The position numbers were made by a program, and so were the translations under genes. The notes under the pieces were generated by a model that was given only the letters and a program-made list of their open reading frames with translations, ran no database searches and was not told the DNA's origin. A DNA stretch of 47,715 nucleotides from Pelomyxa schiedti (Eukaryota > Protista > Evosea). This document shows positions 8,319-43,107 of this stretch, piece after piece. The first letter of the stretch is position 1. Every line of letters begins with the position of its first letter. The DNA lies in NCBI GenBank assembly GCA_020536535.1, contig JAHLWZ010000918.1, positions 1 through 47,715 of the forward strand. Reading direction: 5' to 3'.

Positions 8319-8937
8319 ATGGCAACACGCAAGAAGCCGACAGCGGCCGCGGCGTCCGCAGCAGCCGAGGAGGGTGACGACGCAGGTGGGCCTGCCGCTG
8401 ACGAGCCAATGGAAGGTGGTGCCGCTGATAAAGTTCGTTCCCCCCCGATACACCTCTTTTTTTTCTTTTTTTTCTCGATTTTTTTTTTATTGTCTGTTTG
8501 TTTTCTGCATTTCTGGTCGACTAACATGTTGGAAAGGTCGTGGCGACCAAGGGAGGAAAGAGATTTGAAGTTAAAAAGTGGAACGCTGTTGCTTTGTGGG
8601 CATGGAATGTGGTCGTCGATAATTGTGCTATATGCCGTAACCACATTATGGAAAGGCTTTATTATTTGAACCCGTTTAACGTTCTAACATCCCTGTAGGA
8701 TCTTTGCATAGAATGCCAGGCCAACCAAGCCAGCGCTACCACCGACGAGTGCACCGTTGCTTGGGGTATTTGTAACCACGCATTCCACTTCCACTGCATT
8801 TCACGCTGGCTGAAAACGAGACAAGTAATTCTCCTTTCTTCACAGCCTCAATACTCATTAACTGACCACAACAATCTTTTGTTTAGGTATGCCCACTGGA
8901 CAACCGTGACTGGGAGTTCCAGAAATATGGTCGCTAA
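8319..8937 (+). CDS. RBX1: RING-box protein 1 (cullin-RING ligase subunit); exons 8319-8432, 8537-8650, 8699-8824, 8887-8937
   Basis: [27 protein letters not shown]|[36 protein letters not shown]|[16 protein letters not shown]; the second intron starts with GA. Confidence 0.97.
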
Positions 8938-17751: not shown

Positions 17752-20700
17752 TTATGACTTTGAGCGACCGCGGGGCTTGCGTGATGAATCCTCTTCTTCA
17801 TCGTCGTCCCGGTCTTGCCAAAGTCCAGCCTGAATGTATGTTAGTGTATTGAATCCAAGAGGTGAGAAATGGGGTGACTGTACCCGGGCTTCTCGGGCGG
17901 CGTCTTGTGCCTCTAGCATTTTTCTGGCAAGAAGGCTGGTTTTATCATGTCCGCTTTCGGCGTGGCATAATCCGGCTTTCACTAGCTCAGCGTTGACATT
18001 GAGAGTGTTGGCTGTCAAAGTGATGTGCATGACTGGCCCGCGTTTGTGTTCCACTGTTGCCTTCATTGTTTTGCCCTGTTGGTGGGAGTGAGCGGAACGT
18101 TGAGGGGGAAATTTAAGATATACCTTTACAAGGTTTGTGAATTTAGTAATTGCTTGATTGTAAAATGGAGATGTTGTTGGAGCGGAAGCGCATCCAGCTA
18201 GTGCACAGTGTATTGCTTGGGCGGGGAATTTGGTGTGTTCCTCGGGTAAGGGTTGCATGTGTGCCCATTGGACCTCTTCAGTCTGTGTGGTTATGGTCAA
18301 CCTCAGGAAAAAAAAAAAGGGATTGCACACATTTCCGTAGTCAATAAAGATTACATGGGCCGATTTTGTTTCTTCTACAACATGTAGAACCTGGGCACGA
18401 TACCAGCAGTTGTCAGCAGCGTACATCGCTCCGACGTACTGATTTTGTGACGGAGTGAATTCTGTGGTTGATGGTGGAAGAGAAGACAAAGCTGTTCTGA
18501 TATCCGATAAGGTATTGGCCGAATCTGAGTTTGAGGTCAGAGTGTGGCTGGACAAACTCTTAGTTACCTGCAGTTGCTATTTGGACATAAAAGTCGTTTA
18601 AGCTGCGTATTTCGGATACAACAACTTCCACGACTTGCTTATTGCTTTCCTCGCTCTCATAAGCCTCCCACAGCTAGGTGTGTTTTAACCAAATAACGAA
18701 AACGCAGGAAATACATACATTTTTTCTTGCCGATTTTGCTTTGGCTTCTGCCGAAGCCAAAGTATGGAATTGAGGAGATCTAGACGCACCTTCAGACACA
18801 GTAACTAACCCTTCTGCAGCCAGCAAAACGGCAAGGTTTTGCTTCGGTTTCAGTTAGTAGGTTTTTGGACTGGGGTGGTGCACACGTTTCCGTTAAGGAT
18901 TGTAAGGTTTCCTAAGAAGTTTCCACCCTTATCTAATCCTTCAACTTCAATTTTTACCTGTAAAGATGTTAAAATGAATTGGGTATTTTAGAGCGATACT
19001 TCTTGAAGATGACATAGAGATTTGGTAAAGGCAAGTCCCCTGTCAGAGTACATTTTTTTACTGGTGTCGTCCTTGGCCGGAGCACGAACGGCTAAGGGTT
19101 TATTAAAAAGGACAATATTTCAAATGATTGAAACCAGAGAGGCAGAATGCTATCATGCAAGACTGTGAAGGAATAAAAAGTTTCAAACGTGTTGCACTGA
19201 AAGTGTACTCAACAATAGCACGATGTACACCTTCTCCGCGCTCCAGGAATGGCAAGAAACGTTTTGATTGTGCTTGTGATTGATTCTGTGGGTGGGTTGT
19301 CAGTATATCAAACCCTTGGATGAAAAAAGGAAGCCAGAAGATACTTGGGTGAGATCGTTAAGTTGGATGAGTTTTATAGCTTTAGGATTCCACCACCCGG
19401 CAAGAGCTTTTTCTGCCCGCTTCTCAGCCATGCAAAGCATGCTATATTGTTGGGAGCATGATTCCTCTGATCGGTGGTTGACAGTTTTGGCGTAACCCAT
19501 CGAAAGAAGAGTCTCGGCGATGTTCCTTTTTGGGTTGTTTTAGAAACTTCTATCTGGGAAGTTAGCACATACTCGTGCTCAAGCAACACAGTGTAGTAAC
19601 CACGTGGTCCCATATTTCTCTGTGGAGTATCGACTGTGGGAGTTCGCTCATAGTCAAGTTTACAAACAACCTAACTGGTGATGAGGACACGTTAATGTCG
19701 AAAAAGAGCGGACTTTTTTGCCAAAAATTTTTTTTCGTAAAAATTCTCTAGCTTCCAAGGCAAGAGAGGTTTCTGCCTAACAACAAAATTGGTATTTATA
19801 CAACAAACTGAGCAAAGAACGAACCTTTTTGGTAGCCAGGGCTTCAGGATCAAGTGCTTCGGGAGTTGCTGCTGCGACTGTTGCAAAGATATCTTCTCGG
19901 CTCATTCTTTGGAAATTAGATACAAAAAGCTGGAAGGAGGCTACCGTGGTACTGTAACACTTGACAGTGAGACCTTTAGTTCATCGCCAGCTGCGGTTTG
20001 AACGGTAAATAGACCGGGGGTGGTTATGTCAACAACCTGACGAAAATTAGACAAAAAAAGGAAAAAAAAAGTAAGTCTTACGAGTCCTTCAACAGTGGTA
20101 TCAGGTCTCTCTGCGACACCCTCCGCGCTTGTGGCGGGTGTGGTGGCTGTGGACCAGATTCCTAGCTTGGAGGTTTTCGCTTTTCTGAACGTTGCTCTAA
20201 TTAGTACAAATACAAGGAACAACAAAACCAAACCCTTGTAAAGCCTGGAGTTGAGTACAGTAAGCAGCCATTGTTGGGTCATGAGTTGGAGCGGACCATT
20301 GGGCGTAGGAGCCAAAGCCAGTGGAAACTAACTCGGAGCCTACATCTCGGCCACTGCATTGGACGGTGGCCACAATGTCATTGTTCTTGTCGACACCTTT
20401 GTGGAAGTTAGAGTCTTCATGAAAACTTGGACAGGCTAACTGTGTAATGTGAGTACTACATCTCTGTGTAATAAATGTTGCTCCACGAAAGCACGAGCTT
20501 CCTTGCCAAATGGATCTGCTTCCAGAGTTCTGGTTTTTTCAACCCACCTCACTGCTGGACAGGCTACACCAGCCAGTATAACGGTCAACAGCCTGAAGGA
20601 GGGAAGAGCAGTAACTCTTAGAACGGAACCCGTGCGGGCTTGTTCAACAATTCCGCGCATGGGTGCATGTCTGTTCTCTTCAAAGAAAGTGAGAGAATCG

Positions 20701-34217: not shown

Positions 34218-37200
34218 ATGACGACCATACTGCGTAAGATGGTGTCCAAGCAGAAGAGGAGGTTCGAGGGAGGTGGTTTTGACCTCGACCTGAGCTACAT
34301 TGAGTCTAGAATAATAGGTGCATTTCCCTCCATCCTGAATGCTGGAGTTTTGTTCTTTCGTTTCTTGACAATCAAAAGCGATGGGCTACCCGAGTGAGTC
34401 AATAGAGGGGTTGTACAGGAACAAAATGTCTGATGTGCAAAGGTTTGTCATGATTGATCTCTTTTTTTTTTCCCCTTAAAACCAAAAGATTCTTGGATTC
34501 ACGTATGTACCCTGTAAGAGATTACCTTTCCTGATCCCAAAATTGAACAGTTCACGATAACCACTACAAAGTGTACAACTTGTATGACACACTTTTTCCC
34601 TTTTTTCGAAAAATTAATGTTGGGTGAAGATGTGCAGAGAGGAAATATGACCACGCAAAGTTTCACAACAGAGGTCTTTTATTTTAGAATTATGAGGGCC
34701 TTCGGAATAACTTCCTTAGTCGCGGAGTTCCCCTATTCTGACCACACTTCTCCCCCTCTCGCTTTGACTCTAGCTTTTTGCTTGGATGCTGTATGCACAA
34801 TACTACTTACTTTACCCTCAATCTCTTCAGGAGAAATTCCTTGATTCGGACCCCTCCAATGTTATTGTAGTCCATTGCAAGGTAAATTGGAATCTCCGTA
34901 TCCTCTCTTACCTCTTTTTTCATTAGGCTGGAAAGGTAATTGGTGGAGTGTCTCCAAAGCTGCTAACATGAACAGGGTAGGACAGGTACCTTCATTTCTT
35001 GCCTACTACTGTGGCTTCACATGTGCGGTACTGCTTCTGAAGCCATGAGACTGTTTGGAAATAAGAGAACTCTTAACGGCAGGGTAGAACTTCCCTTAGT
35101 TTAAACGCTTAACAATCATACAGGGAATAACTATCCCATCACAAGAGAGAACAGTTAGGTACTTCGAAAAGTTTACAACTGGCCATCGCCTAGGAACGCC
35201 CCCACCGCCTCTTCCCGCGGAGAGGACAGTTGTATTAATGCACATTCTGATGAAAACTATACCTAACATGGATAGAGCAGGAGGATGTGGTATGTAAACA
35301 AATTGCAAAGCCTGGGGTAATTTTTTTTCCCTCAGAGCCCTGGCTTTCCATTTCTCAATGTGGGAAAACTGTTTATTCATCCAAACCATTGGTTGACAGA
35401 CATTACTCCCTTTTGCACTGACGACTAGCAGAGGGTGAAAAAAGGAACTTCCTCTGTGGAGATAGAGTGTGACCACACAATGCTTCTCAATGATATCAAC
35501 ATTCACTTTTTCCACAAAAATTCAAGTGTAAGCCTTTTACACTTCGTTGGTATTATTAACACCCGTAGTGCAAGATGTTCTCACTTTCGTTCCACACGTC
35601 GTTTCTTAAAGAAAACCTTACTTTCCTCAAGGTGTTTTAGCATTTTATTCTAACTCTGTTTTTACTCCTTTTTCAGCACGATTTGGATCGAGCCTGTAAA
35701 GATAAACTTCACAAAACTTTCCCCCCGAATTTTTCTGTATTCTCTTGTTCAATGATCTTTTTTATGCCTGAAGTTCATGAGGTAACTCTGAATTTTTGTG
35801 AATTTTCCCAAAGACCTGTGGAAACAATTACCTGTTTCTTGTGTAAGAAACCTGTCTCACCTCGTGACATGACTGCAAACTGCGAGTATCCAGTCTAAGC
35901 CTCTTTTTTACTTGACTTACTGGAAAAAAGGGACCGAATATGGCACTGGGATTGTGCTTTGTGCATAAAGTGTGGAAAGCATGTGGTAAGAAATGTTCGT
36001 TTGCTGTCTATACTAATACTATGTTAGGGAGATTGCTGTACCTTTACTCCAGACAAGACTCCAATATGCATTTTGTGTGCAGTATCCAACGAGGACACAG
36101 CAGGAACATTTAAGGGATTCTTCACTTTCTGTGAAGGGTGTGGAGAAGTAAGGGTGATGTAGAGCCTGGCGCTGTATTTTATTCTATTAGGTCATTGACT
36201 CAGAGCTGTACGAACAAATTAGTGACGTCAAATGGCACCAATGGTGCTTTAAGTGCAGTGTGTGCTCCAAAGGCCTAGTAGGCGAAGAGGAGTACACTGT
36301 TCTCAGGAAAAAGCTTTTTTGCAAAGATTGTGCCAGTACGGCATCTCATCTCCGCCGCTTGTCTAACACCTATTATTTAGAACCAGTACTTGATCACCCA
36401 AACGATCCCGTTGTCCCTCCTGGTTTTTTCCTCATTTAATCTTGCCCTCCTAAATCTTACAAGAGCCCGTTCCCGAGCCTACGCCTGTCCACGAAGAACC
36501 AAAACCAATACCTCCTCCAGATCCAATACTGCCGCCACCTCCCCCGCTTGACATTCCACCTCCGACGGCAGCCCCTCCGCCACCCACACCTGCCCCTCCC
36601 CCTCCAACGCCGGCCCCTCCTTCGCCCGCGCCTCCACCCCCCACGCCTGCTCCACCCCCGCCGACTCCTGCTCCGCCTCCACCAACACCTGCTCCACCGC
36701 CAATACATACTCCCTCGCCCCAGCCCACACTTCCCACTGTATCATGTGCATCTACAACTACCAGCAGTTGGAGTACCCCAGATCATGGCGCAGCTGCTAA
36801 GAAAGAGTGGCGCAAGTCAGGTGTGCCAGTTTCCGGTGGTGGAAATACAAGACAATCCCGCCTCTCAATCAATGGTATGCCTTACCATATGCCCTCTTAA
36901 GTAAAATCATTTGTAGAATCTCGCATGCGTGCCAACTTGCCAACTTGCTCCGAGTGCACTAAGTTCATTCTCCCCGATCAGGACCATCTTATGGCGCTTG
37001 GTGGTCATTACCACTCCATGTGTTTCTGCTGCGTGAAGTGCAAGCATCCATTCGAAGACACAAAATTCTTCCTTTGGTACTGTCCAACAAAAGTATTCAA
37101 TTTAACCAATATCCTGAAGGAAAGGGAAACCACATTGCCAAACCTGTGAGACAGAGCTCCGCCTTTCTGAACTTCCAAAATGTGGTTTTTGCAAACAGCC

Positions 37201-37740
37201 TATTGTACAAGGACCTTACATCACTGATGCAGCTGTACGTTCTCTCAACTTCCCTCTTTTCACTGACTACTTCGAAAGGGTGGGAAGTACCATAAACAGT
37301 GCTTCCTCTGCGTGTTTTGCGGAAATAGTATCACAGGACCCTACTTCAACAGGGATGGCAAGATTTATTGCCCAGGAGATTTCGAGAGGCTATTTGCCAT
37401 CCCTTGCCGAGCCTGTTCACAGCCAATAACACAGGGTGCCCATGTACAGGCGGTATGAACCAGCCCCGTTTTCTTCTCCAATCTCACTGCTATTTATGGA
37501 CCTGCTCCATTGCGTTTGGATTAGCTGTCCTACACATACCACATGCACTGCTTCTGCTGTTCCTACTGCCAAGAACTCCTAGAAGGAAAGCCCTTCTTCA
37601 ATACCGGAGGTGAGCCCTCATGTGAGAAATGTGCTGTACAAGCGGCACAAGCCGCGGCAGCATCAGCGGCCTCACCCGCAGCCGATCCCTCTGACCCCTC
37701 GTTATCCTCTACTCCCCCTACTGACTCTTCCTCATCCTGA
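34218..37740 (+). CDS. PTEN phosphatase + C2 domain + five LIM domains with a Pro-rich linker (Dictyostelium Lpten-like)
   Basis: VSKQKRRF..FDLDLSYI..AMGYP..GLYRN, HCK|AGK|GRTG, GITIPSQ, DLDRACKDK; five CxxC..HxxCxxCxxC..CxxC LIM repeats. Confidence 0.92.
36530..36720 (+). repeat. Coding 21-nt degenerate repeat (PTPAPPP)n in the LIM-PTEN linker
   Basis: Repeated ccNacNccNgcNccNccNccN units. Confidence 0.8.
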
Positions 37741-37864
37741 ACAACCAACACCAACCAAAAACAAACAATAAGTACTAGTATAACAAACATTTGAAATAAA
37801 TACACCATTTTGGGAGTTTGCAATTTCATTTCTATTTTCCACTATGTAGGTACAGGCATGCCCC

Positions 37865-40719
37865 TCAATCCTGGTTTGTTTTTGTTGTGGGTGTTTGTGT
37901 TGGTGCAGTTGAGGGTGTTGATGACGTCATCGGCTTTGCGTTTGGTTCCACAGAGGAGGAGAGTGACGGGGCACCAGTCAGGAGGTTGCCGTGGAGTGCT
38001 TTCCATGCTGCGTAGCCACCAAACACAACGCGTACTTGTGGGTGCCCGGCAGCAGCGAGGCGGTACCCGGCAGAGAAGGACATAATTCCGGTGGTGCACA
38101 TCAGAATCACTTCCCTATCCCACGGAACACTGTCAAAGTATCTGCGGTAATAGTGAGTTGGTTGCATTTAGTTGTGCTGCTGGGTGCGTGGTGATGCGTT
38201 GTTTTTTTCCCGTATTTGCTTTTGTTCGGGAGTTTTTTTAGCGGTGGGAATTCAAGGGAAAAAACCTGTCGAAATCAACAAAAGAGAATTCGTGGGCACC
38301 AGGTGCTGACGGTGCAGTAAGGCGTTCAAAAGAGAACCGCACATCGCAAACAAATGTTGATGCTAAACGTGAGGCATCAAGGTGCTAAAAAAAAAAAAAG
38401 GTCAGCCTTTTCTAATTTATGTTAAATTAGGGTTACCTTTGGATCCAACCAGGCAAAAGTAGGAGGGTAACCGCGCAGGATAATTGGTAGAACATGCAAG
38501 AAATAGTCAATATCTGCCACAGTTGTCGTGCAGCCCATACTAATCCTTATTGAGGACAGTGCCTCTGCCACAGTAAGGCCCATACCCAGAAGTACATGGG
38601 ACGGTTCAATCCGATCTTTTCCCAATTAGTTTCTAACAAAAGATAAACAAAATATTACCTGCTGTGCAAGCACTGCCTATGGATACACAGATTTCATAAC
38701 AGTCTAATCCAGCAAGTAATTTAATCCCTTCCTGGCCAGGGAAAGTGACATTAACGGTACCAGGAAGCTGGTGGTCAGGACTGGCCTCAGAAAAAAACGC
38801 AGTTGAGTCAATCGCCGATATACCCTAAGACATTGTTAAATTGGGGAGTCAAAAAAGAAATTGAGTGAAGGTACAGAAATAAGTTTGGCTCGTAAGGCTT
38901 GAAGGCGAGAAAATTCAGAAGTCATTCTTGCGTGAGCAAGCTTTGCAGCAAGCGCAAATCTTCAATATCAATTAGAGACTTAGCAAGAAGAATGTTGAAC
39001 AACCCAGCAATTTGATGTACTGCTTCAGTTCCAGAACGCAACTCCCGCTCTTGATGCCCTCCGTATATCAGAGGGAACCACCCACCCAAGGGATCAATCC
39101 CTTCAACAATTATATGAGCCGCTGCAGTTGGTGTAGAATCACTGGAGACTACTCCTCTCCAAAATAGAGCTCCACACCCTTTGGGGCCATTGATCTTGTG
39201 GGCGGTGATAGTGGCGAAATCAACTCCAAGTTCTGTTCAATAAAGTGAGTTGTAGGAAACAAGAAGTAAAGAGAAGACCTTGCACATTTACTGGTAATTT
39301 GCAGAAACTTTGCACCAAGTCGGTATGCATTAAAATGCCGCGTTCCTTGCATGCAGCAGCAATTTCCTTTATTGGCTGTACAGCCCCAGTTTCGTTATTG
39401 GCGTGCATCACAGTGACTAAAACGGTATCATCACGGATGGCTGCAATTATGTCCTCTACTTTTACTCTCCCATCACGACCTGCATTAACTCTGGTCACGG
39501 TTCCTCCGAGTGCCTCCACCTGTGTGCCGATGTAAATACAACAAACTTCAGAATCTTACAAAGACATTCCTGCATGCATGATCCGAGAATGGAATCATGT
39601 TCTATCGCAGATGTGACGATGTGACCTTTGAATCCAGGCTGCGCCGACTTTCCCAATCTCTGCCAAAGCAGTGAGTACTTGATCACTCAATGGAAAGGCA
39701 GGTACAGGATTGCCGTGAAGAAGTGCATGCATCCAGACACCTTTCACAACAGTGTTATTAGCCTCAGTTCCACCACTTGTGAAAGTGAGCTGGTGAGGAC
39801 TGCAGCCCAGTATACTAGCAATAGAGCATCGTGCAGAGTCAATTACCCCCCTTGCCTCCCGCCCATAAGTATGCAGCGACGATGCATTGCCGTACATGCT
39901 GGTTAGAATGCGTGACATTTCGCGTTGCACCTACAAGTGATACATGTACATGTTTGAGTTTTGTTATCTCAGATATATATATACCCCCGATCCCCTCTCC
40001 CAATCTCGCCAATTCAGCCAACCCCAAAAATGGTTGTAGCAGTCATGCCTCTGGGTCCAGTGGCGTGGACGCGTTGTTGTCAAAGTAGCACTTGTGTTGC
40101 CCCGTAACGAACTTGTTACGCTCTTCCCCCCACCAGCTCCACACCCTACTCAAGAAGAATCCACCCTATTTAACCATGTCAAACGAGAGGGGGAGGGGGC
40201 CGTCCGCGCCAACAATCTACGCGCATCACACGCACGCATCACACGCACGCATCACACGCACGCATCACACGCACGCATCACACGCACGCATCACACGCAC
40301 GCATCACACGCACGCATCACACACACGCATCACACACACGCATCACACACACGCATCACACGCACCTTTGGCTTTGGCCTCCCTACAGCGGGCACAAGCG
40401 ACGACGACGACAAGGAGGAAGACGAAGACGTGGCCGCCGCCGTAGACGACGCGGATGTGGTTGTGGTTGTGGTCGAGGTCGATGTCGTCGTAGTCGGTGG
40501 TGCCGCCGACGGTGACGTCGTAGAAGAAGGTGGGGAGGCAGATGGTGCAGAGCTGCTGCTGTTGCTGCTGCTGCTCGCCGCATCACTCGTACTTGTGGGA
40601 GCCGCGGCGGTGGCGCTAGAGGTCGCCGTCTGGATCGGGGTTTTTGTTGTTGTTGTAGGCGCAGTGGCGGTGTTGTTGTCACCAGACAACGCCGGTTGTT
40701 GCTGCTGGGCGTCCATCAT
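37865..40719 (-). CDS. Group I (NifS/IscS-type) cysteine desulfurase fused to a C-terminal rhodanese domain (~12 exons)
   Basis: [59 protein letters not shown] (PLP Lys), [36 protein letters not shown]; then in frame via introns 38385-38436 and 38142-38265: [45 protein letters not shown]. Confidence 0.9.
40223..40365. repeat. Minisatellite, 11 x 13 bp (GCATCACAC[G/A]CAC), in intron 1 of the desulfurase gene
   Basis: Counted directly: 7 G-type, 3 A-type, then 1 G-type unit. Confidence 0.95.
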
Positions 40720-40802: not shown

Positions 40803-41898
40803 TTACATGAAAATTTCTTCATTGACGATAAGGTCGGTGGTATGTGGCACAGTGAAGTCACCAACATGAAGCCCGGTGGGACCATCGTGAACCGAAAACG
40901 TGATTTCCGTTGGACTGGTGGGTGTGGACTGATGGCGATGCCCACGTGCAAGGGACAGAAAGCGTAGGCGGGCCTGCCATGTTTCCTGTGTGGTACATGC
41001 TGAACTGTGACTGTGACCTCACGAAAATGTGGCTGGTTCCAATTGGCACCACAGGGTAATTCGATGGAAACTTCGCCACCTCTTTGCTGGTTGTGAGATC
41101 CACCACAAGGTGAGATGGTGCAGAGTAGTCCCAATGAATGATACAAACAGGGCCGCCAGGAATCCAGACCATGCCTTGTGGATAATCACGGCACTGAATT
41201 TCTGATGCTACAACGAGGTGCCCTTGTTCAGAGCTGGCCTTCAAGTCCCAGAAGGTGGCAGTTCCAATGGAACTAAACAACATCAGAACATCATCATTGA
41301 AAGGCGAAAAGTAATGCGCTCCCACACTTCCAATAAGCTCAGGCTTAAATACCATTTCTGTACCTCCACCATCTGGCACCACAAGTACTTGTTCTGAATC
41401 CTCTGACACAACCCACTTCCTGTTGCAACACACAGCTGTGTCCCACAGTTGAACACGTTTTGGTGCCAAGTCATCACTCACTCCTGGAATTGGGCACAAA
41501 TAAGCTCCAGAGCGTTTATTTTGCAACAGAATCCTGCTGAATCCAACACAGCCACATACAGTGTCAGTGACAAAGAACTGTGAGTGCCTGAGAAGCCCCA
41601 GTGTCAGTGACACACTCACATACAAAAAGTGGTTAGGGATTGGGAGCCTGAACACGGCATCATCAAGTGGCCTGAGCACCCAGTCCTCAGCCCACGCCCT
41701 GAACGCCTCAGTGGATTGCGTCCAACGCACCAGCGATTGTGGGACAACAGCCAGGCCACTCCCACCACCGCCACCAACCCAGTCATTTTCAATAAAAAGA
41801 GGGTGCTGCTTTGTTGCTCTTTCTATTGCTGCTTGCCTGCGTGTTTCGGCTATTTGGGCACAGAGAATGGCCAATACCTGTGATTTGGTGGTAGTCAT
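40803..41898 (-). CDS. Intronless hypothetical protein, beta-rich, possibly frameshifted near the 3' end
   Basis: Single ~346-aa ORF from ATG 41898 (stop 40858); an alternative frame near 40920 reads TEITFSVHDGPTGLHVGDFTVP..* to 40803. Confidence 0.55.
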
Positions 41899-42102
41899 TT
41901 GCCTTCGATTGAGTGAACCGAATTGTTTCTTCGCTTGGGACAATAAAATGACCGCAGCGTTTGTGACGATAACAAATTTAATTCTGTTAAATGTGCTAAC
42001 GGGGAGTGACGAACACGTTCGTAGATAAGAAAGTATTCATTTATTTTAATTGAGTTGGTGAGTTCTAAACGAGATGAACTTATTTTTGAGTTCTAAACTT
42101 AT

Positions 42103-43107
42103 TTACAGCTTGAACTGCCCGTGTAGAAGTTGCATTACGAGAGTGATATCTCGCTGATAATCGGGGCTGTGTGGGGTTAGTTGTATTATACCACTGGGGT
42201 GTGCAACTAACGTGAGGGTGTTCCATAGAGCGTTGGCTGCATTGTAGGCTTTCTTGGCTGTTTCGCTGGAACGCTCATCTGAACCCAGTATGTCATAGAA
42301 GAAGGCACTTAAGTTAAATGCGAGGCTGAGGCGAGTGGAGTGAGTAGCCGGCAGTTGTCGTTCCGCTATATCTAGCCCGAAGCGGAATGCACTCAGTGAG
42401 ATATCAGCGAAATTCTTGCGTTCTGGCCCAGTGGAGTTCTCGGCGAGATATCTGCTGTAACTTCCTTTCCTGTGAGATTAGTTCAAGCTCGGTATTGTGG
42501 CATTCTTTTGGCTGGTAACATACATGTTGTAATAACATACTTCACTATCAGCAGATGCGGCAGATGGAATCAAGTGGGTATCCAGTAAGTCCAGCAAATC
42601 TTTACAAATTGCAACAAGTTCCGCTCTCACTGTTTGGAGGAATTCTTTTAATTTGGAACTGTGGAAGGGAGTGCTGGCTTTAGCGGATTCTGCTGGCTCC
42701 ACTGCCGAGATAACCTTGAGAGATAATCTTCTGGCGCCGATTTCATTTTTGTATGCAATTGACAGCAGGTTTATTTCCTCAACTATTCAAAAGCATGACC
42801 TACCGAACACAGGCGGCTTCTTTGTTGTTTTACCCACCAGTGAGGTCCGATTCAGCAGTAGCTACAACGTTCTTCACAGCCACCACCATGTCTATCAGAT
42901 ATTAGTATAATAATCCCAAGCCATACACGCCACGCCCCACTTACATAATACAGCATACCCACAGACATACACACGGCACATACCACAGTACCTCCCAGCC
43001 ATCTCAGCCAGTTTGGCCATCTCCACCCAGTGCGTGTGATTGTGATTGTGCCCCCCACCACACATGCCCCCCGTTTGTTGTTGTGTCCAACATCCCATCA
43101 TCGTCAT
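42103..43107 (-). CDS. Divergent 14-3-3 protein (multi-exon; start tentative)
   Basis: MAKLAEMAGRYC|DMV..EEINLLSIAYKNEIGARR..ELVAICKDLLDLLDTHLIP..M|KGSYSRYLAE..LPATHSTRLSLAFNLSAFFYDIL..AKKAY..DITLVMQLL. Confidence 0.88.

Follow-up and report, generated by a model that had tools for sequence, protein, structure and literature searches.

A region on the minus strand of a Pelomyxa schiedti contig (JAHLWZ010000918.1 of assembly GCA_020536535.1), running from position 40719 to 37865 of the 47,715-nt stretch analysed here (hereafter the window), carries the gene Pelo_14142 and raises the question of whether a cysteine desulfurase and a rhodanese are made there as one chain, where such a gene came from, and to which acceptor its product would hand sulfur. 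Pelo_14142 is a real, spliced and transcribed single-chain desulfurase-rhodanese gene. Taken as a whole, it is probably best explained as a bacterial desulfurase-rhodanese that was already fused when acquired, that works by a persulfide relay and that has been repurposed in the amoeba.

Pelo_14142 is transcribed as one spliced mRNA

The gene comprises 11 exons and 10 introns, which together form a single reading frame of 2082 nt encoding 693 amino acids (aa), with no stop within any exon; the four codons split by introns decode as Glu, Gly, Asp and Arg. The exon set is defined by ten splice joints seen in RNA-seq contigs across the gene, taken from four RNA-seq runs on single cells, all of them made from one sample in one study and all containing the stretch. 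The unspliced reading frame stops at 38422, a stop which is excised with intron 9, and introns 38436-38385 and 38265-38142, previously predicted as GT-AG introns joining desulfurase to rhodanese in frame, were both found as joints in contigs of three runs, with a shorter side of 119 letters. In the same number of runs, desulfurase and rhodanese exons occur together on single RNA contigs; some of these hold the exon with the pyridoxal phosphate (PLP) lysine together with both rhodanese exons, and two of them also list the exon with the catalytic cysteine. Spliced transcripts thus cross the 38422 stop, and exon 11 by itself matches the rhodanese profile (see below), contrary to the outcomes named beforehand as refuting a fusion, with the proviso that RNA contigs demonstrate the presence of a form only and that rare shorter transcripts could coexist. 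Coverage of exon 1 reaches only about 40540, leaving its 5' part above that position uncovered; the start codon adopted here is the one in the published model. The features of the gene, in order of transcription, are as follows.

40366..40719, minus strand: exon 1, coding for the start Met and a low-complexity Ser/Thr/Ala extension of 118 aa (68% Ser+Thr+Ala), which the bacterial relatives lack
40166..40365, minus strand: intron 1, GT-AG, 200 nt, RNA joint
40049..40165, minus strand: exon 2, Trp-rich leader, then start of the desulfurase (YFDNNAST)
39931..40048, minus strand: intron 2, GC-AG, 118 nt, RNA joint
39706..39930, minus strand: exon 3, desulfurase (PF00266, 36.6 bits)
39570..39659, minus strand: exon 4, desulfurase, including the His (EHDS) that stacks on the substrate
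39520..39569, minus strand: intron 4, non-canonical GA-AG, 50 nt, RNA joint in two runs
39279..39519, minus strand: exon 5, desulfurase (PF00266, 66.3 bits), placed by its tree inside the clade of bacterial fusions (SH-aLRT 99)
39004..39232, minus strand: exon 6, predicted PLP lysine K355 (codon 39197-39195); some 21 aa of it are a coding insertion
38875..38959, minus strand: exon 7, desulfurase
38659..38824, minus strand: exon 8, predicted catalytic Cys C500 (codon 38668-38666) in a group I loop
38437..38615, minus strand: exon 9, desulfurase C-terminus and linker
38385..38436, minus strand: intron 9, GT-AG, 52 nt, RNA joint in three runs, removes the 38422 stop
38266..38384, minus strand: exon 10, rhodanese domain, N-terminal half
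38142..38265, minus strand: intron 10, GT-AG, 124 nt, RNA joint in three runs
37865..38141, minus strand: exon 11, active-site half of the rhodanese with predicted C617 (codon 38098-38096, loop CTTGIMS), 43-aa Ser/Thr/Pro tail, stop

All profile searches, sequence searches and trees of Pelo_14142 were run exon by exon rather than on the joined 693-aa protein. The preliminary description of the locus, made from the letters alone, had placed a TAHK lysine, a VSIGSACTA catalytic cysteine, the 38422 stop and a rhodanese cysteine on this strand, and all of these motifs lie where it put them; the two Pfam profiles that it named, Aminotran_5 (PF00266) and Rhodanese (PF00581), both matched. PF00266 matches exons 3, 5, 6 and 8, exceeding its cut-off on exons 3, 5 and 6, while exon 11 alone reaches 27.1 bits with PF00581 (cut-off 22.2) and exon 10 aligns to the N-terminal half of the rhodaneses in a family of bacterial fusions described below. 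A group I desulfurase fold is indicated by PF00266 together with the TAHK motif holding K355, and a group I catalytic loop by C500 in exon 8, the loop running on into exon 9. The best NCBIfam matches of the exons are NifS, IscS and DndA. A bacterial member of the fusion family scores 398.8 against the NifS equivalog TIGR03402, below the cut-off of 530.75 (Pelo_14142 itself being scored exon-wise only), and the rhodanese loop, CTTGIMS, departs from the canonical CxxGxR. On these grounds the encoded protein is predicted to be a group I cysteine desulfurase followed by a single rhodanese domain, with the PLP lysine and both cysteines intact. The predicted fold of the bacterial family member P0059 has a pTM of 0.81, and its best PDB matches span the desulfurase part only.

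This domain content is already on record, though uninterpreted, in the 2022 supplement of PMC8887013: Pelo_14142 is one of seven 'NifS' in Table S2, annotated as having a 'rhodanese domain at C-terminus', so the fusion was not, as first described, hidden by introns; start and sequence of that entry agree with the gene described here. The main text of the same paper places Pelo_14142 as sister to Riflebacteria (Fig. 4b) and mentions neither the word rhodanese nor a function.

Bacterial relatives and the origin of the gene

Exon 11, used as query, led to bacterial desulfurase-rhodanese fusions, and the set was expanded to well over 100 proteins of about 490-500 aa (P0010, P0055-P0204). Their sources are metagenomes and metagenome-assembled genomes, with named members in Planctomycetota, Sumerlaeota, Verrucomicrobiota and Deltaproteobacteria; in the Atlas, the cluster holding the fusions of about 491 aa is 97% bacterial, with Rifleibacteriota the commonest group. 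Pelo_14142 shares about 60% identity per exon with this family of about 495 aa, across both domains, and for exons 3-11 both the best and the median scores of the family lie above those of 79 generic desulfurases. The exon 5 tree places Pelo_14142 within the clade of the fusion family (SH-aLRT 99), with the amoeba's own desulfurase paralogues outside it; in the trees of exons 3, 8, 9 and 11, which are short and poorly resolved, the nearest rows are all members of the family. The linker between desulfurase and rhodanese is in register with that of the bacterial fusions. Because both domains match the same fused bacterial proteins exon by exon, the gene must have entered already fused, acquired laterally from bacteria in this form; of the two origins first proposed, lateral acquisition is upheld, while a new fusion is disfavoured by the match of both halves to one pre-fused family.

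Of the aligned positions that are invariant in the family, 126/140 are retained in Pelo_14142, which is consistent with a working enzyme, and its C500 loop is the commonest loop type of the family (97/144). The family pattern of the rhodanese loop is C-x-T-G-[IV]-[FMLY]-S, position 6 being occupied, among the 144 members, by Phe (119), Met (10), Leu (7), Tyr (6) or Ile (2), and by Arg in none. The methionine in place of arginine, taken earlier as a hint of altered acceptor specificity, is then a family trait and no novelty of the amoeba lineage, and the Arg-less loop is an inheritance from the bacterial family.

Carriers of the fusion are rare and scattered (2/301 Planctomycetota and 1/301 Desulfobacterota), and since, in addition, the short-exon trees do not resolve relationships within the family, no donor lineage can be named; the published tree, with Riflebacteria as sister (PMC8887013), agrees with the Rifleibacteriota-rich Atlas cluster. 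Pelo_14142 is the only eukaryotic desulfurase-rhodanese fusion among the matches listed, and the lack of a eukaryotic orthologue among them is a weak test, in a comparison that did not extend to the third NifS described for Mastigella eilhardi (PMC10711303). Two sets of matches were set aside. In a GTDB scan with exon 5, all matches were generic desulfurases lacking a fusion, which were used as outgroup, and Ralstonia plasmid matches covering 90% of the query proved to be a desulfurase beside a methyltransferase, not a fusion. Among the generic GTDB desulfurases, those at five loci (L025, L058, L059, L082 and L094) lie in open frames of 710-1273 aa from stop to stop and possibly represent other, N-terminal fusions.

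A proposed persulfide relay and candidate sulfur acceptors

The product of Pelo_14142 would probably be a cytosolic, PLP-dependent desulfurase-rhodanese, derived from an anaerobic bacterium and later furnished with ten introns and low-complexity tails. One spliced mRNA encodes both domains; by likeness to the Pseudorhodoferax enzyme, the desulfurase would convert cysteine to alanine and leave a persulfide on C500, transfer of this persulfide to C617 would speed turnover, and C617-SSH would give its sulfane sulfur to acceptors other than housekeeping NifU scaffolds. The analogue is CD-Rhd of Pseudorhodoferax sp. Leaf274 (WP_056898193.1; PMC8931425; used in the biosensor CyReB, PMC12319549), in which, as in Pelo_14142, a group I desulfurase precedes one rhodanese, catalytic cysteines number two and an intramolecular persulfide relay is proposed. 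In CD-Rhd, the passage of persulfide from the Cys of the desulfurase to that of the rhodanese raises turnover about tenfold with glutathione and drives persulfidation of a protein acceptor, roGFP2; H2S is released very fast (PMC8931425). By analogy, a relay from C500-SSH to C617-SSH is the most likely mode of catalysis in Pelo_14142, which differs from CD-Rhd in its 118-aa and 43-aa low-complexity tails and its introns. Bacteria already offer examples of this architecture and of its chemistry, to which Pelo_14142 adds a eukaryotic member.

In bacteria, the copies of the family of about 495 aa stand in a gene cluster, whereas Pelo_14142 stands alone among eukaryotic genes. A Tes/TrsS-like radical S-adenosylmethionine (radical-SAM) gene lies no more than 2.3 kb upstream of the fusion in 27 of the 29 loci with enough upstream DNA (some of them near-duplicates), and the wider cluster includes FabF, FabG-like reductases, FabZ, acyl carrier protein (ACP), a nitroreductase, a hexapeptide acyltransferase, PEMT and more radical-SAM genes, to which some clusters add a PigE-like aminotransferase. 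All four carrier genomes tested contain the cluster's radical-SAM orthologue, and all four hold a separate NifS over the equivalog cut-off as well as NifU, the two being adjacent in three; given this, and the cluster in 27/29 loci, the fusion would therefore be an extra, pathway-dedicated sulfur donor in bacteria. Since Tes makes lipid S-C bonds using an auxiliary Fe-S cluster (PMC9433317), the acceptor in the donor bacteria was probably this radical-SAM/ACP lipid cluster, which may insert sulfur into an ACP-bound acyl chain or cross-link it, the sulfur being replenished by the fusion. No literature description of a bacterial cluster combining Tes-like, ACP, type II fatty acid synthesis (FAS-II) and desulfurase-rhodanese genes was found; it is rare and apparently undescribed, and its product may be a sulfur-containing or cross-linked lipid that is likewise new. 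A conserved layout was seen at three loci (L104, L107 and L200), where FabF, SDRs, a nitroreductase, ACP and FabZ accompany two Tes/TrsS-like radical-SAM genes, the hexapeptide acyltransferase, PEMT, the desulfurase-rhodanese, the PigE-like aminotransferase, a further radical-SAM gene and a methyltransferase.

Archamoebae have lost the mitochondrial iron-sulfur cluster (ISC) system and with it NFS1, which elsewhere in eukaryotes also feeds cytosolic tRNA thiolation. Searches of the P. schiedti assembly (5337 contigs, 52,367,397 bases), some of them run jointly on several genomes with positive controls, found Urm1, an Ncs6-like gene and Uba4/MOCS3 (with Uba4 as best PDB match), the genes which the preliminary description had proposed for a survey. 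The Uba4/MOCS3 gene (contig C961, about 18430-19721, plus strand; L228:430-1722) appears to lead, beyond the adenylation domain, through a GT-AG intron of 49 nt into a final exon of 30 aa, whose end is at L228:1722, and the stop of a convergent ferredoxin-domain gene lies 38 bases beyond. Neither Pfam nor our own rhodanese profile gave a rhodanese match beyond the adenylation domain or beside the other scanned ThiF loci; because our profile is weak on distant types, the argument leans mainly on the lack of room and the Pfam blanks. Judged from this gene model, Uba4 of P. schiedti appears to be without a rhodanese domain, which Uba4 needs in yeast (PMC12954526). A near-copy of the 5' part of the Uba4 gene was observed on contig C3564.

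Because P. schiedti Uba4 seems to extend no further than the adenylation domain and a short last exon, the Urm1-Uba4-Ncs6 tRNA-thiolation relay is our leading, if tentative, choice of a single acceptor, and the fused desulfurase-rhodanese would be a natural in-trans substitute for the apparently missing Uba4 rhodanese. The Nfs1-Tum1-Uba4(MOCS3)-Urm1-Ncs6 relay of yeast and human likewise involves persulfide transfer from desulfurase to rhodanese, as proposed for Pelo_14142; there the rhodanese is fused to Uba4, whereas in P. schiedti it is fused to the desulfurase and Uba4 apparently has none (PMC12954526). The full scenario, a rewired tRNA thiolation in which, with no mitochondrial NFS1, Uba4 lost its rhodanese and the fusion thiocarboxylates Urm1 in trans, replacing Nfs1, Tum1 and the Uba4 rhodanese, is conceivable, though doubtful. 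Pelo_14142 is a concrete, expressible candidate for the sulfur source of archamoebal tRNA thiolation, and a Uba4 that apparently has no rhodanese makes the link testable.

Several points weigh against the relay and this acceptor. The activity of Pelo_14142, and of the whole bacterial family of about 495 aa, is assigned by analogy, and the characterised CD-Rhd probably belongs to another cluster, as is suggested both by Atlas clustering, in which the 518-522-aa Pseudomonadota fusions fall apart from the 491-aa Rifleibacteriota type, and by the spacing of its cysteines (132 vs 117-119). The shortening of Uba4 is read from a gene model, not from RNA, and six-frame searches can miss partner genes split by introns. 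The genome also holds two tandem MPST/Tum1-like rhodaneses (C92:10884-11468 and C584:25693-26361), and yeast Tum1 partly stands in for the Uba4 rhodanese (PMC12954526); since such a protein is present and can substitute, the fusion need not be the donor, and the choice of acceptor is kept tentative. With regard to other acceptors, searches of the assembly for MoaE, MoaC and SufBD gave no match, although introns may hide such genes, so a role in molybdenum cofactor synthesis is unsupported here. A ThiF-family gene (C253:61172-61770; L216), which we take to be like bacterial TcdA/CsdL, is another possible acceptor; in E. coli, TcdA/CsdL is linked to the CsdA-CsdE sulfur relay.

Rather than serving a dedicated protein acceptor, the enzyme might act as a general generator of H2S or low-molecular-weight persulfide, or as a protein persulfidase, possibly feeding other, prokaryote-style sulfur relays of the genome (of the CoA-disulfide-reductase-rhodanese kind) or providing the endosymbionts with sulfide. 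The rapid H2S release and roGFP2 persulfidation by CD-Rhd (PMC8931425) would fit such a role, as would the further single rhodaneses of P. schiedti with CxxGxRS loops (CxxGLRS at C800:116404-116589 and C1019:12119-12307; three more rhodanese matches are Cdc25-like), but the bacterial family is embedded in a pathway cluster and is not free-standing, and a look for evidence on export, or on a need of the symbionts for sulfur, found none. General supply is on balance a rather improbable role.

It is unlikely that the enzyme supplies sulfur to Fe-S assembly of the NIF type or to the amoeba's NifU-FdhD fusion (Pelo_10620). The protein is a predicted group I desulfurase with NifS among its best NCBIfam exon matches, extra NifS copies might partner NifU-FdhD, and the identity of the organelle's NifS was left unresolved in PMC8887013. 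However, exon 5 groups apart from the amoeba's own paralogues, in agreement with the published tree, the bacterial carriers have NifS and NifU of their own, the family member tested falls well short of the NifS cut-off, and NifU-FdhD is targeted to mitochondria in yeast, whereas Pelo_14142 is predicted to lie outside the organelle (PMC8887013). The earlier proposal of independence from ISC/NIF assembly thus probably holds, since a separate NifS/NifU is present in 4/4 carriers as well as in the amoeba (PMC8887013).

Quite improbable is retention of the ancestral role, in which the fusion would resupply sulfur to radical-SAM acyl-chain enzymes, for sulfur insertion or repair of the auxiliary cluster, in an unrecognised amoebal lipid pathway. 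The bacterial gene context and the chemistry of Tes speak for it, but Tes/TrsS-like enzymes and PF23545 were not found in the P. schiedti assembly, where positive controls matched, six-frame searches being able to miss intron-split genes, and none of the 16 radical-SAM loci of P. schiedti looks like the enzymes of the cluster (best local E 2e-4). No cluster gene adjoins Pelo_14142 in the window, PEMT and FAS-II genes not having been searched genome-wide. Because the Tes-like partners were not found, the job of the enzyme has probably changed in the amoeba, in keeping with the repurposed relay preferred here. Finally, a fusion new in the amoeba lineage, or an artefact of two-gene read-through or bacterial contamination, is scarcely credible: the unspliced frame does stop at 38422 and the assembly was made from single cells with endosymbionts, but ten spliceosomal introns have RNA joints, single contigs span the junction, and the two halves find their counterparts in one set of fused bacterial proteins, whose linker lies in register.

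Intron 4, other features and neighbouring genes

The RNA joint of intron 4 can be read solely as GA-AG (39569-39520), since no shift yields GT-AG or GC-AG, and splicing in this way recovers residues that can be aligned to those of the bacterial relatives. The published model of Pelo_14142 differs here, being mis-spliced: it takes a GT that lies 10 nt downstream, together with an AG further on, and so loses the start of exon 5 (PMC8887013). The intron types counted in that study were GT-AG, GC-AG and one GT-GG, with zero GA-AG; the present joint documents RNA-supported GA-AG splicing in a genome reported to have none and corrects the published gene model. Elsewhere in the window, the conserved frame of an RBX1-like gene (8651-8698, plus strand) is, from sequence, restored only by a GA-AG intron, so that GA donors may recur in this genome.

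A further candidate intron, 39154-39101 inside exon 6, was ruled out, the RNA running straight through it. Most of intron 1 is occupied by a 13-bp tandem repeat of 11 copies (98% matches, 40222-40365), which begins at the donor site. The neighbours of Pelo_14142 look eukaryotic by eye: a LIM-domain-like gene (36260-37786, plus strand) lies tail to tail with it, and upstream are a 361-aa intronless open reading frame (40858-41943, minus strand) and a 14-3-3-like exon (42478-42702, minus strand).

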